NCBI GenBank assembly: GCA_950097015.1
Contig: CATNEN010000038.1
Coordinates: 9,486,001-9,550,000, forward strand
Direction of reading: 5' to 3'
From: Macrostomum hystrix
Taxonomy: Eukaryota; Animalia; Platyhelminthes
DNA length: 64,000 nucleotides
Shown here piece after piece: positions 12,483 to 24,973 of the stretch. The notes below the pieces were generated by a model that made no database searches, was not told the DNA's origin, and was given only the letters and a program-made list of their open reading frames with translations. Made by a program: the position numbers and the translations under genes. Numbering within the stretch: the stretch's first letter is position 1; every line of letters starts with the position of its first letter.

Positions 12483-15400
12483 ATGATCGTGTCAACTGTA
12501 GGACTGCGAGCTCTGATGCTCATTGTTATCACAGGAATTGTCGATTCCCAAGGTGAGCTGCTTCGATGATTTATTACGCTCTAGTTGTCTGGAGCTTCAA
12601 GTAGTTGGTTGCAGCCTAATGATTAGATCGTCGAACTCACGAGTTGAAGGTCGGGGTTCGAATCTTGACTCCACTGAACAATTTGTATCCTTTAGCAAGA
12701 CACTTAAATCGGCGTTGCTTCAATTAACGAAGCTGTTAAATGGGTGGCTTCCCACCAGTCCATGGACAGATCGAACAGCCGTACGATGGACCTCGCAATA
12801 GCTGCGGCTGTGCTGTCGGCTGCACATTTCGCCCAAATAGGGCAGGTGTTATAGATTATTATTATTGTTCTTTTTATTAAGAGCTTCGCTTTTGCATTTT
12901 ATCCTCAAGAGACTGCGAATCCGTGTTTGGTAAAACAAATTTTCCTATTCTTTTTCTGCCAGACTGTCGATCAAACCGGGCCGGATACTCTTACATGGGT
13001 AACATCAGCACAACAGCAAATGGCTGCACCTGCAGGGCTTGGACGGACAGTGCCAACACACGATACACAGACACCACATTTCCTGATGGAAGCCGCGCCG
13101 CGGCTGGCAGTCGATGCCGAAACCCCGGTGCAGAGGCGGATCGACCCTGGTGTTACATTGTTAGCAACTCGTCGTGTTTTATAGGCTCGTCAAGCTCTTT
13201 CGACTACTGCGATAACATCCCCGTCTGCTGTGAGATGCAAGCTTTTATAATGTGACCATTGCTAGCAGTATAGTTGTTGTAGTCGAACTAGTAAGACTAG
13301 AATAACGAAGGAAGCAACACAGCTTGGAGGCGACGGTGGTCCATTACGCTAACCCGAATGGAACTGGACGAGCCGTGGAATGCTGTCGGGCTGGCAAACC
13401 TCGACGATAGATGGTTAGGGCCCGATGTAGCTTAGCCGGTTTCTGTTAAAGAAAGGGCAGCGACACACAAAGTGCTCAGCCTCTTCTTTGTCATACAGTA
13501 CCTGGCGAGATAGCTATGGCCTGTGAGGGTCATGGCGAGGGCGCGGATATCATTCCAATTTTGGTTGAGAAGGGTGTTCCTGAGCCTGCGAGACGCATGC
13601 GGAACTCCGGCACAAGATTGCGGACAGCTCTGGGTGCCCCCCGCTCAACTTTCCCTGTGAAGCCCGCGTGCCATGGGTTCTAGTAAGGAAACCATAATAA
13701 ATTATATCAGTCGCTTTTGGGCACAAACTTTTAGAAAAATTGAATGGTCTTTGTCTACCAATAACCTAATTCTTTGTGATCATGCTTTAAACCAAACAAC
13801 TAATGAATATTCACACCATTGCAACCTATAACCTATGTTGCGCAGCGAAAACGTGTCGAGAGACCCCGGCTGGAACAGAGTACAACGGCGCGGTCTCGCA
13901 GACCTCGTCTGGTAGCACCTGCCTTTCGTGGTCCAGCTTCCTTTTTGCTAACTTTTCGCATCTGTTCACAGCGGACGCCACGATTCCGGGCAGTGTGTGT
14001 CGAAACATCGCCCTCGACTTTACGTTAGTTAAAATTCATAAATATCGATTGAAACATGATTAAAGGGAGGCTTTGTCGTGTTAACTTTGCTTTTCACAAA
14101 CTTTTTTATTCCTTTTAACAAAAACGAATCATTCAAAATAATACGCCAAACCTGCAGTACCAACCCGTCATCAATAAACTTCGTGCCATGGTGTATAGTG
14201 AACGTCACTGGAAATCTGGCTGTTTCAAACTGCAGCATCCCGTTCTGCTCTCAAGTGAACCCAGGTGGATGTCGAACGGACTTGTCGGGTGCCAGTTACC
14301 GAGGCAACCAGTCCACGTCAGTGACTGGTAAGACTTGCATCCGCTGGGACTCGGCTAGTGTCTACACTGCTACCTCTTGGCCAGTGTCCGGGGAGACAAT
14401 CGCTAGCGCTGCGAACTACTGCAGGAATCCGAACAACAGTCCAGTGGGACTCTGGTGCCTTGTGTCAACCACTGACTGGGAGCCCTGTGTGGTGCCGGTC
14501 TGCGGTAAGTTGACAGACAGCTTTTGTACATAAGGTACATTATTTTATTTTATATGATTTTTATAGAAACTTGTTTCTTTACAAGCAGCTGATATACGAA
14601 CTGCGAAGGCAAATTGTGTTTAATGAAACTTTTGAAGACATTTCCTCGTCCTGCTGGAGCTCTAGGTCTCAATATTTACTCTAAATCCCCAAAATAAGAG
14701 CCACGTTTTTGTGCGTCAATTTTTCTGATGATTAAATCTGAGTGGTTAAAAAGAATATCGGGCCGAACTTTAATCTCCCGAAGTATTAATTAATTACTTA
14801 TTTATTTAATTATCTTCTGTCCGTACGTGATTTGTATTTTTAAGCTCCAAATCGAAAAATTATGCAGTACCGATTACCGGCTGTCCAAGCCCACAGTCGG
14901 ACAGCTACAAGTACAAGGATTTGATAACGTACAGAGGCTGTGCCAGCTGGTCCAGTGTGTACGCCAGCAAGTCTGCCACCTGGTACAACTCGAAGATATT
15001 GCCACCTGGCAGCAACGCGATTATCAGCTCGCCTCTCTTCCACCCAGCCTCTCTGCCCGACCTCACTCTAGCGGCTGCGGCTGCATATTGTCGCAACCCA
15101 GACAATGACATCACAGGTCCTTGGTGTCCAACCAGCGGCGGGACAAAGCAGTACTGTGCTAATCCCTGCTTCTTGGCTCGTGAGTTAGCGATTGGTTTAA
15201 AAACGCACTGCACAGAGTGGTTAGGGCAGAGCAGTTAACGCGTTTGTCTCTCGCACCAAGATTCCGCGGCGAGGCCACATTCATCTGGGGCGCAGCCGTG
15301 GAGGGGAGGCTTTGAGGCTTGCCACCCTTGAGGGCCAACGTCCTAGGCACAGTGAAAATGTACATTGCCTGGCTGAGTGTGTGCCTGCGGACGTTATCTG

Positions 15401-23800: not shown

Positions 23801-24973
23801 ACCGTCAACATTATTTACACATAAAAAAGCTGCAGATACTAAAAATCACCGTTGCTAGGCTGTGGTAACTAGTATGACTCCCGAACTGATTTTACTGAGC
23901 TTAAGCCTACGACAAGGCGACAATAGTTCTTTGTGCAGCTTCGATCGTAGCTACGGCTTAGGAGCTTGTATCATTCACGATGAGGGCCAAATACCAAAAT
24001 ATTTACTCCCTGTGCTTTCGAGCGTTTAGGGGTCAGTGAAATGGGCACGACTGCAGTCTGTGCGTCGTGCCCTGCAACAATATGCGTGTCGAATGGGTTT
24101 GTAGCCTAGTGGCTAGAGCTTCGGTCTCACGACTTCTTGAGGGTCGACGGTTCGATTCCTGTCTGCATTGAAACAATTTGTGTCTTTTAGGAAGACACTT
24201 TACTCTGAATTGTCCCAGTTCACCAAGCTCTTAAATAGGTACCAGCATTAGCTGGGGTAATTGAGAATGCGTGTGACTTCCCCCAGGTACTTGGGTTGAA
24301 CAGCCGTACGCAGCCTTCTGGTGCGCCGCGCAATAGCTGCGGCTGTGCTGTCACCCGATCTCTACTCTGACCTTGCCATCGCACCCGCAGAGCAATCAGC
24401 CACATCCAGGCCAACCGTGCTCAGCGGCAGCAGAACAAACCGCCCAAACTGCCTCAGCCGCCAAAGGAGCGCAAGTCAGTGACCAAGAAGGCAGCGAGCA
24501 AGGCTTCCGTGGAGCCAAAAATCCAGCGCAGCACAGCGGTTGGCCTCGGCGGCAGCACGTCGGCTTCCACCAGCAGCCCCAGCGCCACACTGGACCGCCG
24601 AATGTACCGCAGAGATCCGGTCGGTCGCGACCAGCAGCCATCGAAATTTTCGCACAATAACGCTGTAATGAAGGCGATGGCGAATAGTGACGAGCCGCCA
24701 GATGTTTGGGTGGTCGGACAGGATGCCGGACCGTCTGCGACGCTTCAGCCTATCCGTGAAGAAGAGTTGCAACTTCGGGCTGGCGATCCCCGAAATTCGC
24801 CGCTAATCGATCCGCAGCCGCCGCCGAGAGCGCGCGAAACAGAAACGCTGGAGCGGCGTCTGGACTTTGACGCCGAGTCAATGGCGTCGGAGGCTTCACT
24901 GCCGCGAACACTGCGACAGCAGCAGCATCAGCTGCATCGTTTGAATGCTGCTAGTCATGCCCATGGATTGTAG
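20862..24973 (+). CDS. Multi-kringle type I membrane protein B (signal peptide, 6 kringles, TM, ~190-aa charged/Pro-rich tail); exons 20862-20937, 21049-21291, 21403-21580, 21655-21998, 22419-22727, 22854-23156, 23252-23506, 23582-23608, 23690-23774, 24391-24973
   Basis: Signal MKTGSALLLLLLAWSSRSVYG; kringles such as TCQRWDSQSPHPH...[55 protein letters not shown]. Intron number and phases equal those of gene A; joins the 24479-24973 ORF in frame. Confidence 0.87.
24094..24352 (+). mobile_element. SINE family A copy
   Basis: TGTAGCCTAGTGGCTAGAGCTTCGG...GGTTCGATTCC head and GCGCCGCGCAATAGCTGCGGCTGTGCTGTC body. Confidence 0.85.

Follow-up and report, generated by a model that had tools for sequence, protein, structure and literature searches.

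Tandem six-kringle membrane-protein genes of Macrostomum hystrix as candidate krg1-type glue anchors

Two adjacent kringle genes in the flatworm Macrostomum hystrix raise the question of which protein family they belong to and whether their products could fasten the animal's glue to its cells. Temporary bioadhesion, with attachment followed by release, serves as a template in work on reversible glues, and of all parts of the flatworm adhesion model the receptor on the cell side is understood least. The window, a stretch of 64,000 nucleotides (contig CATNEN010000038.1, positions 9,486,001 to 9,550,000 of the forward strand), carries intact same-strand tandem duplicates, gene 1 at 12483-18253 and gene 2 at 20862-24973. 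The observation of two six-kringle membrane-protein genes at this locus is confirmed as real. The neighbours of the pair are TBP and a cadherin, both on the opposite strand, with the cadherin being the next gene downstream. Two open reading frames between gene 1 and gene 2 were considered as a retroelement endonuclease and dropped, as they have no Pfam match.

Gene structure and protein architecture

Both genes encode type-I membrane proteins with the same order of parts: signal peptide, six kringles (K1 to K6), a stalk of just 9-14 residues, a single transmembrane (TM) helix, and a non-enzymatic tail. The introns of both genes read GT..AG, and their phases are the same (1,1,2,1,1,1,1,1,2, that of the gene 1 microexon being predicted). 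The joined frames are open and give 800 aa for gene 2, and 989 aa for gene 1 if its predicted microexon is used; the gene 1 frame stays open also without it. Searches were done exon by exon, and exons were joined only for the frame check, the excision of K2, the hydrophobicity scan, and the domain tree.

PF00051 is the only profile returned by Pfam over all exons of both genes. It is found in every kringle exon, with E from 1e-5 to 1.5e-24, and the array is uninterrupted by any other globular domain. K2 is interrupted by a phase-2 intron in both genes, and its match covers the N-terminal half only. K4 is divergent and has a partial match of 28-29 bits against a cut-off of 34.3. The six-cysteine kringle pattern is present in 12 of the 12 domains, six per protein. 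In each protein, the hydrophobicity scan finds an N-terminal leader and exactly one strong 19-mer at about residue 587, immediately after K6 (Kyte-Doolittle 2.2) and followed by basic residues. Protease, kinase, PAN, WSC, and CUB domains were not found by Pfam in any exon of either gene. The first-pass annotation had described adjacent 10-exon genes with equal intron phases, which the splice reading and, for gene 2, RNA uphold. Its domain order, from signal peptide through six kringles, short stalk, and TM helix to a non-enzymatic tail, agrees with Pfam, the cysteine pattern, and hydrophobicity. The Pfam search it proposed for six PF00051 domains matched every kringle exon, K2 and K4 partially.

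Table 1. Coding exons of gene 1 and gene 2 in the window
Feature	Position	Strand	Observations
Gene 1 exon 1, ATG and signal peptide MIVSTVGLRALMLIVITGIVDSQ	12483..12552	+	Phase-1 donor; strongest hydrophobic segment at residue 2
Gene 1 exon 2, K1	12963..13229	+	PF00051 E=7e-11; splice sites
Gene 1 exon 3, first K2 half	13846..14023	+	Ends in phase 2 within CRN...WC loop; partial Pfam E=9.5e-6, profile positions 5-53
Gene 1 exon 4, second K2 half and whole K3	14158..14504	+	Pfam E=1.6e-15
Gene 1 exon 5, divergent K4	14868..15179	+	Partial Pfam E=2.6e-6; six-Cys pattern
Gene 1 exon 6, K5 and Thr/Ala/Pro linker	15504..15800	+	Pfam E=5.4e-17
Gene 1 exon 7, K6	16138..16389	+	Pfam E=1.5e-18
Gene 1 predicted stalk microexon SSIVVTAPGSTDTV	16828..16869	+	Phase 1 in and out, GTAAGT donor; by analogy with gene 2 microexon
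Gene 1 exon 9, TM helix VIVAGILGMVGLTTMLSLAGSLIAA	16967..17045	+	Phase-2 donor; Kyte-Doolittle 2.18
Gene 1 exon 10, 375-aa cytoplasmic tail and stop	17128..18253	+	Open frame; phase-2 acceptor
Gene 2 exon 1, ATG and signal peptide MKTGSALLLLLLAWSSRSVYG	20862..20937	+	Joint 20937/21049 in X2, X3, X4
Gene 2 exon 2, K1	21049..21291	+	Pfam E=8.7e-14; RNA joints
Gene 2 exon 3, first K2 half	21403..21580	+	Partial Pfam E=5.6e-6; joints 21291/21403, 21580/21655
Gene 2 exon 4, second K2 half and K3	21655..21998	+	Pfam E=2.4e-15; RNA joints
Gene 2 exon 5, divergent K4 with insert, CRNPDND retained	22419..22727	+	Partial Pfam E=1.1e-6; joint 21998/22419 in 4/4 runs
Gene 2 exon 6, K5	22854..23156	+	Pfam E=4e-14; RNA joints
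Gene 2 exon 7, K6	23252..23506	+	Pfam E=1.5e-24; RNA joints
Gene 2 exon 8, 27-nt stalk microexon	23582..23608	+	Joints 23506/23582, 23608/23690 in 4/4 runs
Gene 2 exon 9, TM helix	23690..23774	+	Kyte-Doolittle 2.2; joints in X1, X2, X4
Gene 2 exon 10, 194-aa basic tail (pI 10.2) and stop	24391..24973	+	3' UTR to ~25328; no Pfam match

Gene 2 is transcribed. All nine of its introns are confirmed by mismatch-free spliced contigs from four public runs (X1-X4), and its mRNA has ten coding exons, including the microexon and the TM exon, in a transcript that spans 20824 to 25328. Beyond the transcript end at ~25328, runs X1-X4 contain no further splice joint and no downstream domain joined to the gene. 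The RNA check that the first-pass annotation had called for thus finds nine introns, microexon, TM exon, and transcript end in X1-X4. The outcomes it had named as contrary, TM skipping or splicing on to a protease or kinase domain, are not seen in the gene 2 contigs of the four runs. The last Cys codon of gene 2 K6 comes from the microexon, and the junction without it reads TAG. A nine-exon gene 2 model was abandoned because of this TAG at the K6/TM junction; the microexon restored the frame, and RNA agreed. An acceptor at 22368 for exon 5 was rejected, since RNA places it at 22419.

The 3' part of gene 1, including the stalk microexon and the Gly-rich tail, is a model predicted from homology. 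This tail contains 27% Gly in Gly/Tyr-rich repeats, and its DNA has two ~75-nt copies, 87% alike, at 17625-17816. It has no Pfam match, and its first 130 residues find no database relatives in a homologue search. The two tails are unrelated, that of gene 1 being Gly/Tyr-rich (375 aa) and that of gene 2 basic (194 aa). Tail comparisons among gene 1, gene 2, and Tmed-krg1 of Theama mediterranea give low-complexity matches only, and no conserved cytoplasmic motif is therefore claimed. Unrelated tails on a shared ectodomain design suggest different intracellular coupling.

Relationship to Tmed-krg1

The first-pass annotation mentioned a transmembrane kringle protein reported from flatworm adhesive organs. 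Such a protein exists. It is Tmed-krg1 of the polyclad T. mediterranea (UQT06013.1 / ON323680; Bertemes et al. 2022, Mar Drugs 20:359), a membrane-bound multi-kringle protein that is expressed only in the anchor cells of the adhesive organ (PMC9229212). RNAi of Tmed-krg1 leads to a non-adhesive phenotype, a result shown for Theama only, and the M. lignano homologue RNA815_8153 is tail-specific with an in situ signal in anchor cells (PMC9229212). The presence of any krg1 protein on microvilli and its binding of the cohesive protein are, by the authors' own account, proposals only (PMC9229212).

Gene 1 and gene 2 are shown to be co-orthologues of Tmed-krg1 by a domain-by-domain tree and a reverse best-hit comparison. 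The closest public protein is a Macrostomum lignano fragment, 81% identical. In a search of 1.84 billion proteins, the best exon 4 match after this fragment is Tmed-krg1 (P0005, UQT06013.1). Gene 1 exon 4 is 81% identical to the M. lignano fragment (P0011) and 44% identical to Tmed-krg1 residues 5-112. Exon 6 in each gene, gene 1 exon 3, and gene 2 exon 5 likewise have Tmed-krg1 as their top match in a local comparison with the 150 listed hits. In the kringle tree, five of the six positions pair with a specific Tmed-krg1 kringle. Support is strong for K3 with Tmed K1 (100/96), K5 with Tmed K3 (98/92), and K2 with Tmed K5 (96/91), and weaker for K4 with Tmed K2 (87/31) and K6 with Tmed K4 (84/87); K1 is without a resolved counterpart. 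In the reverse direction, Tmed kringles 1-7 match gene 1 or gene 2 best among the Pfam-detected kringle loci of the genome (local tblastn). Individual Tmed kringles were used here, as the full-length query was swamped by its own Pro/Thr repeat. An insert motif of the K4 type, (L/I)(F/Y)(H/N)PAxL(P/S)D, is common to Tmed-krg1 and both genes. Per-kringle identity is 41-67% between gene 1 and gene 2, and 40-55% with Theama.

The earlier suggestion of a little-characterised family of kringle-array surface or adhesion proteins stands for the family and its adhesion part. "Little-characterised" does not stand, with in situ hybridisation and RNAi already published. A characterised family of exactly this architecture, which the first-pass annotation had listed as an outcome against novelty, exists in krg1. 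The pair is a useful annotation rather than a new protein class, since the architecture and the adhesion link were published in 2022. What is new here is a tandem duplication of old date whose copies differ entirely in their cytoplasmic tails, a kringle order unlike that of Theama together with the lack of a mucin stalk, and the canonical Asp-x-Asp lysine-site pair being kept only in the insert-bearing K4.

Lysine sites and the proposed role in adhesion

The lysine-site table, in which the plasminogen control scored correctly, shows the Asp55-x-Asp57 pair kept only in the insert-bearing K4 of gene 1, gene 2, and Theama. Both acidic residues are absent in K1, K2, K3, and gene 2 K5, and gene 1 K5 keeps only Asp55. 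The full set of lysine-site residues is found in no kringle of gene 1, gene 2, or Tmed-krg1. Aligned to human plasminogen kringles, gene 2 K6 is the most plasminogen-like (N55, D57, W62, F64, R71, F72) and is one residue short of a plasminogen-like site. The lysine-binding hypothesis is thereby narrowed to one or two of the six kringles.

Gene 1 K4 has an insert of ~20 residues in the C2-C3 loop and retains CRNPDND (Asp55/Asp57). K4 is called a kringle because of its Cys pattern, its CRNPDND..GPWC motif, its partial Pfam match, and a sequence match in the PDB, where the best hit of gene 2 K4 among solved structures is plasminogen kringle 1 (E=6e-7). AlphaFold2 models of the K4 exon are of low confidence, with pLDDT of 44 from a 2-row alignment and 53 from an 18-row kringle alignment. 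The hits listed by Foldseek against the PDB all contain kringles, none is significant, and the best has E=0.12. These models lend weak support to a kringle fold. The K4 Asp-x-Asp is conserved across about the depth of rhabditophoran flatworms.

The pair are likely to be krg1-type glue anchors in the membranes of duo-gland adhesive organs, with the cell type, the ligand, and the roles of K4 and the tails being inferred. By homology, the kringle array would sit on the microvilli of anchor cells. There it may hold the secreted glue, a Lys/Arg-rich cohesive protein of the Mlig-ap1 or Tmed-ap3 type, to the animal, and a polyanionic releasing secretion would then break the bond between kringle and glue. 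The binding is probably not via six canonical lysine pockets. An arrangement in which the duplicated genes form a split glue receptor, with K4 alone as the place where the Lys/Arg-rich cohesive protein docks reversibly, the remaining five kringles as spacers or secondary contacts, and the tails coupled to different intracellular partners, is improbable. In such a case, the 'glycine-loop'-like Gly/Tyr tail of gene 1 could, for example, carry load by binding the intermediate-filament core of the anchor cell, and that of gene 2, which is basic, could have a regulatory role. If true, one small domain would be a handle for engineering reversible glues.

The model put forward for Tmed-krg1, if read literally, is a glue anchor with canonical plasminogen-type pockets in all six kringles, each gripping lysine side chains of the cohesive protein (PMC9229212). 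Mlig-ap1 has Lys/Arg-rich regions with a pI above 14, the Lys/Arg content of cohesive proteins is extremely high, and attachment is blocked by heparin (PMC6410801). Asp55/Asp57 in K4, and D57, W62, F64, R71, and F72 in gene 2 K6, point the same way. However, no kringle has the full site set, and K1, K2, K3, and gene 2 K5 lack both acids. Six-pocket binding is improbable because Asp55-x-Asp57 occurs only in K4, gene 2 K6 is near-complete, and the others are without the site. In M. lignano, an excess of free L-lysine (10%) did not prevent attachment and hindered release instead (PMC6410801), which fits poorly with a tether through lysine pockets. It is unlikely, to a lesser degree, that one or both paralogues, still members of the family, came after the old duplication to act outside the adhesive organs as general surface or matrix receptors, for example in epidermis, gut, or reproductive tissue. 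The paralogues do differ from each other as much as from Theama, their tails are unrelated, and the whole-transcript contigs of gene 2 carry no tissue information. 'Plasminogen-like' multi-kringle membrane proteins are also present in Amphiura, Glandiceps, and Mytilus, animals without duo-gland organs. Against this, the family's only functional data point to anchor cells in two flatworm orders, the same genus included, and each paralogue still has the K4 insert and the full set of six kringle types.

The remaining alternatives concern the gene products themselves. Gene 1 could be silent, or its true 3' end could differ, lacking the TM exon or carrying a different tail in place of the Gly-rich frame; this is very unlikely. 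Its exon structure is a prediction, and the tail lies in G-rich low-complexity DNA with long open frames in several frames and has no database relatives. Yet every one of its ten exons is open, the splice sites are of consensus type, the phases are those of the RNA-confirmed gene 2, and the M. lignano orthologue fragment is 81% identical. Run X1 also contains 36% of the sampled words of 15000-24990, and gene 2 with its intron repeat accounts for ~26% by rough estimate. It is extremely unlikely that the main products are secreted or shed, through TM-exon skipping or stalk cleavage, as soluble glue or clotting-like components. Contigs drop rare variants, which allows minor isoforms, and gene 1 stays in frame if its phase 1-1 microexon alone is skipped. 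But every gene 2 contig across the region, in 4/4 runs, joins K6, microexon, TM exon, and tail. Skipping of the gene 2 microexon creates TAG, and skipping of the TM exon shifts the frame (85 nt in gene 2, 79 nt in gene 1).

For the preferred reading of the pair as krg1-type glue anchors, the locus gives exact gene structures, RNA-supported for gene 2, of candidate receptors in a Macrostomum whose genome is clean and non-duplicated. For M. hystrix, positional RNA-seq has been published (PMC10468722). Since the two paralogues are old and have different tails, RNAi of a single gene could be masked by redundancy.

Comparison with known kringle proteins

Plasminogen, HGF, and apolipoprotein(a) share tandem kringles and the same six-cysteine fold signature with the flatworm pair. 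Gene 2 K6 scores 66-68 bits against each of human plasminogen K1, K2, K4, and K5, and 53.5 bits against K3, with most lysine-site residues kept. In contrast, Pfam finds neither a PAN/apple domain nor an S1 protease or protease-like domain in any exon of the flatworm pair. The proteins of the plasminogen family are secreted, whereas the flatworm pair is membrane-anchored, and most of its kringles are without the lysine-site acidic pair.

Kremen1/2 and ROR1/2 resemble the pair as single-pass membrane proteins with a kringle in the ectodomain. Kremen has a single kringle with WSC and CUB, and ROR has a single kringle with Ig and Frizzled-CRD and a kinase domain. The flatworm pair has no WSC or CUB matches, and unlike ROR/MuSK-type proteins it has six kringles, no CRD, and tails without a Pfam match. 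The 'plasminogen-like' proteins of Amphiura filiformis (XP_072033372.1), Glandiceps talaboti (XP_077981543.1), and Mytilus (VDI66199.1) have 4-5 kringles and no protease, and their last kringle is followed by a hydrophobic segment. In the tree, the kringles of these proteins fall into separate clades and do not pair with individual flatworm kringle positions. To our knowledge, no function has been assigned to them. The initial view is too narrow in taking multi-kringle proteins to end in a protease and membrane kringle proteins to have a single kringle. The trypsin active-site motif occurs in only 6 of the best 150 library hits, and many of these 150 combine several kringles with either a C-terminal hydrophobic segment or a 7TM receptor domain.

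Tmed-krg1 and the pair have in common an N-terminal leader, an unbroken kringle array without a catalytic domain, a C-terminal TM helix, and a non-enzymatic tail. Kringle types K2 to K6 correspond one by one, and the K4 insert with Asp-x-Asp is shared as well. Tmed-krg1 has eight kringle-pattern domains (Pfam detects 7, the paper says 6) compared to six in the Macrostomum pair. Its kringle order is K3-K4-K5-K6-K2-x-x-x, whereas gene 1 and gene 2 run from K1 to K6. One gene is described in Theama, compared to two tandem genes with unrelated tails in M. hystrix. Tmed-krg1 has a mucin-like stalk of ~320 residues rich in Pro/Thr/Glu, while that of gene 2 has 9 residues (RNA-confirmed) and that of gene 1 has 14 (predicted). 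A long mucin-like stalk is not known as a defining feature of the krg1 family. Because the Macrostomum proteins are without it, their geometry at the membrane differs from that of Tmed-krg1.

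Gene structure and transcription

The splice sites of the two tandem kringle genes, gene 1 and gene 2, were read by hand (table). Both genes have the same intron phases, 1,1,2,1,1,1,1,1,2, and their joined frames are open up to one terminal stop, giving 989 residues for gene 1 and 800 residues for gene 2. A nine-exon model of gene 2 was dropped, as its junction between K6 (kringles are numbered K1-K6 from the N-terminus) and the transmembrane (TM) exon read TAG. The microexon of gene 2, exon 8, was found by seeking a phase 1-1 exon; it has a strong acceptor and carries the codon of the last K6 cysteine.

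Exons of the two kringle genes, in window coordinates
Feature	Gene 1	Gene 2	Strand
Exon 1	12483-12552	20862-20937	+
Exon 2	12963-13229	21049-21291	+
Exon 3	13846-14023	21403-21580	+
Exon 4	14158-14504	21655-21998	+
Exon 5	14868-15179	22419-22727	+
Exon 6	15504-15800	22854-23156	+
Exon 7	16138-16389	23252-23506	+
Exon 8	16828-16869 (predicted)	23582-23608	+
Exon 9	16967-17045	23690-23774	+
Exon 10	17128-18253	24391-24973	+

Four public RNA runs from one study (2020, ~47 Mb of contigs each) contain 24-36% of the words of 15000-24990, and their contigs were compared with 19800-25799. The gene 2 contigs align with zero mismatches, and the gaps in their alignment coincide with the nine predicted introns, all GT..AG; these contigs are therefore transcript assemblies of the same species. 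The microexon joints 23506/23582 and 23608/23690 are seen in all four runs and the TM exon-to-tail joint 23774/24391 in three, while the joint 21998/22419 settles the acceptor of exon 5. Contig coverage of gene 2 extends over 20824-25328 and then ends, and no contig on 19800-25799 joins gene 2 to any downstream sequence. Since these joints and the transcript end are seen, the assembled gene 2 transcripts neither skip the TM exon nor splice on to a protease or kinase domain. The first-pass annotation of two adjacent ten-exon genes with matching intron phases is thus upheld by the hand-read sites and, for gene 2, by the RNA joints, as is its claim of a TM segment with no enzyme domain. In one run, X1, the share of 15000-24990 words is 0.36, against ~0.26 estimated for gene 2 and the intron repeat; this excess is only a hint of gene 1 transcription. 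The upstream neighbour encodes TATA-binding protein (1507-2163, minus strand; PF00352, E=5e-71) and the downstream neighbour is a multi-cadherin-repeat gene (28378-32339, minus strand; PF00028, E=2.6e-62).

The introns of both kringle genes contain copies of a SINE-like dispersed repeat, which lies at 23990-24400 in intron 9 of gene 2. Other copies are found at 12609-12817, 16472-16570, 36410-36589, 47089-47342, 59894-60145, and 62974-63235, with 62-84% identity to one another. In the RNA runs, the summed contig depth of 555-1008 in bins 24000-24399 indicates that this element family is abundantly transcribed. An inverted repeat pair of 67 nt, 85% complementary, at 15368-15434 (gene 1 intron 5) and 18728-18794 (just downstream of gene 1), is probably made up of two members of a different short dispersed element. 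Between the kringle genes, 19496-20159 (minus strand) holds two overlapping ORFs of 142 and 122 aa that appear retroelement-like by eye, with no Pfam match and no RNA contig coverage. Two further tracts have strong strand skew and several open frames: a long tandem repeat of PNPSQ/PTKPK type at 37300-39240, and a ~6.6 kb tandem repeat of KSVSSQSSLSHLSPVCVISV-type at 52300-58980.

Domain composition and topology

A motif scan of the 64 kb window found 10 complete CRNP...WC kringle cores, all on the plus strand in 12483-24973, and none elsewhere in the window. K2 of each gene is split by an intron and is additional to these cores. Database searches were run exon by exon, and the exons were joined inside a local script for the frame check. 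The kringle exons of gene 1 match PF00051 with E values of 7e-11, 9.5e-6, 1.6e-15, 2.6e-6, 5.4e-17, and 1.5e-18, and those of gene 2 with 8.7e-14, 5.6e-6, 2.4e-15, 1.1e-6, 4e-14, and 1.5e-24. The weak value at K2 comes from the exon 3 half alone, and that at K4 from a divergent kringle whose Cys2-Cys3 interval is ~20 residues longer. None of the exons, the hydrophobic exon and tails included, matched a further Pfam family.

Both proteins have a hydrophobic leader. Around residue ~587 each has a single strongly hydrophobic stretch of 19 residues (Kyte-Doolittle 2.2), and basic residues come directly after it. The last K6 cysteine is separated from this helix by 9 residues in gene 2 (confirmed) and 14 in gene 1 (predicted). 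With a pI of 6.1, the ectodomains are mildly acidic; they contain 36-38 Cys and 8-10 N-x-S/T sites. Pfam, hydrophobicity and, for gene 2, RNA thus agree with the earlier description of each protein as a leader, six PF00051 kringles, a short stalk, a TM segment, and a non-enzymatic tail.

The cytoplasmic tails of the two proteins are unrelated. That of gene 2 has 194 residues and a pI of 10.2. The predicted tail of gene 1 has 375 residues, 27% Gly, and Gly/Tyr-rich repeats, and a database search with its first 130 residues found no relatives. Its repeats at 17625-17816 consist of two ~75-nt DNA copies, 87% alike, encoding ...GGGGRVGG.GGGHDGW...GGYLLNYQ.Q..., and are reminiscent of the glycine loops in keratin-type proteins.

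Relationship to Tmed-krg1

Exon 4 covers the K2/K3 junction; as a query against all 1.84 billion cluster representatives it matched 2414 kringle proteins. Among public proteins the closest is P0011 (UniRef A0A1I8FCK5), a fragment from Macrostomum lignano; over this exon its identity is 81% with gene 1 and 60% with gene 2. The best co-linear match after it, P0005, is "kringle-like protein 1 [Theama mediterranea]" (UQT06013.1). This is the protein named Tmed-krg1 (Bertemes et al. 2022, PMC9229212), which is predicted to be membrane-bound with a large kringle run outside the cell; within the adhesive organ and elsewhere its expression is confined to the anchor cell, and its RNAi gives a non-adhesive phenotype. 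The M. lignano homologue RNA815_8153 is tail-specific with in situ signal in the anchor cell, and Minona ileanae also has a homologue (PMC9229212).

Kringles were excised by cysteine pattern and placed in a maximum likelihood tree with outgroups including echinoderm, hemichordate, and mussel. The kringles of both genes group with those of Tmed-krg1 as follows: K3 with Tmed kringle 1 (support 100/96), K5 with 3 (98/92), K2 with 5 (96/91), K4 with 2 (87/31), and K6 with 4 (84/87); K1 has no resolved Tmed counterpart in this tree. The window copies are sisters in four of the five groups, so the duplication is younger than the polyclad split, and it predates the M. lignano/M. hystrix split because P0011 is far closer to gene 1. 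Conversely, each Tmed kringle was compared with the window and twelve other places in the genome matching the Pfam kringle model. The best match of Tmed kringles 1-7 was gene 1 or gene 2 in every case, and for kringles 1-4 it falls at the corresponding exon. The flatworm adhesive-organ kringle protein mentioned in the first-pass annotation is Tmed-krg1, to which tree and reverse comparison tie both genes.

Tmed-krg1 differs in having eight kringles by cysteine pattern (residues 29-766), seven by Pfam, and six according to the paper. Its order in Macrostomum types is K3-K4-K5-K6-K2 plus three unresolved kringles, and is thus permuted relative to the Macrostomum genes. It also has a stalk of ~320 residues of Pro/Thr/Glu repeat, which is missing from gene 1 and gene 2.

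Lysine sites and comparison with other kringle proteins

According to the published hypothesis (Bertemes et al. 2022, PMC9229212), lysines of the cohesive protein are bound in kringle lysine pockets, from which they are displaced through competition by a polyanion that the animal releases. The lysine site (Asp55, Asp57, Trp62, aromatic 64, Arg71, aromatic 72) was scored by fixed distance from the cysteines, and a plasminogen-type library protein used as control gave the expected residues. The full set is present in no flatworm kringle scored (gene 1, gene 2, Tmed-krg1). The Asp-x-Asp pair is confined to the K4 type, where both window genes and Theama have it; the conserved insert (L/I)(F/Y)(H/N)PAxL(P/S)D belongs to the same type. 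K6 of gene 2 (N55, D57, W62, F64, R71, F72) is one substitution from a full site and aligns closely to human plasminogen kringles. Both acidic residues are missing from K1, K2, K3, and gene 2 K5; in gene 1, K5 has Asp55 only. In M. lignano, 10% free L-lysine hindered release and did not stop attachment, an excess of arginine likewise hindered release rather than attachment, and heparin blocked attachment (PMC6410801). The free-lysine outcome is hard to square with a lysine-pocket tether. The krg1 family probably acts as the glue holder on the cell side. Contact is likely made mostly via K4, to which K6 may contribute, and/or through charge-based binding of a non-canonical kind.

Protease-free multi-kringle proteins are common in current databases. 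Among the best 150 of the 2414 kringle matches, 6 have the trypsin active-site motif, which does not agree with the earlier premise that multi-kringle proteins end in a protease. In several matches the last kringle is followed by one hydrophobic segment, as in RefSeq "plasminogen-like" proteins from Amphiura and Glandiceps, and others among the best 150 combine a kringle array with a rhodopsin-type 7TM receptor. These kringle-GPCR fusions, from ENA/Logan contigs (P0003, P0004, P0073; also P0018, P0028, P0032, P0036, P0055, P0095), place 3-8 kringles ahead of a 7TM domain of the rhodopsin family (Pfam 7tm_1), and appear to be an uncharacterised architecture.

Given such protease-free and membrane-type arrays elsewhere, together with Tmed-krg1, the architecture of the two Macrostomum proteins is neither unique nor uncharacterised. 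Their reading as kringle-array surface or adhesion proteins is supported, but the family had been called little-characterised, and the architecture of Tmed-krg1 and its connection with adhesion were published in 2022. Gene 1 and gene 2 are new tandem-pair members of this published krg1 family. They add exact gene structures, an old duplication with unrelated tails, and lysine-site residues confined to K4 and K6, as well as a permuted kringle order and an absent stalk in comparison with Theama.
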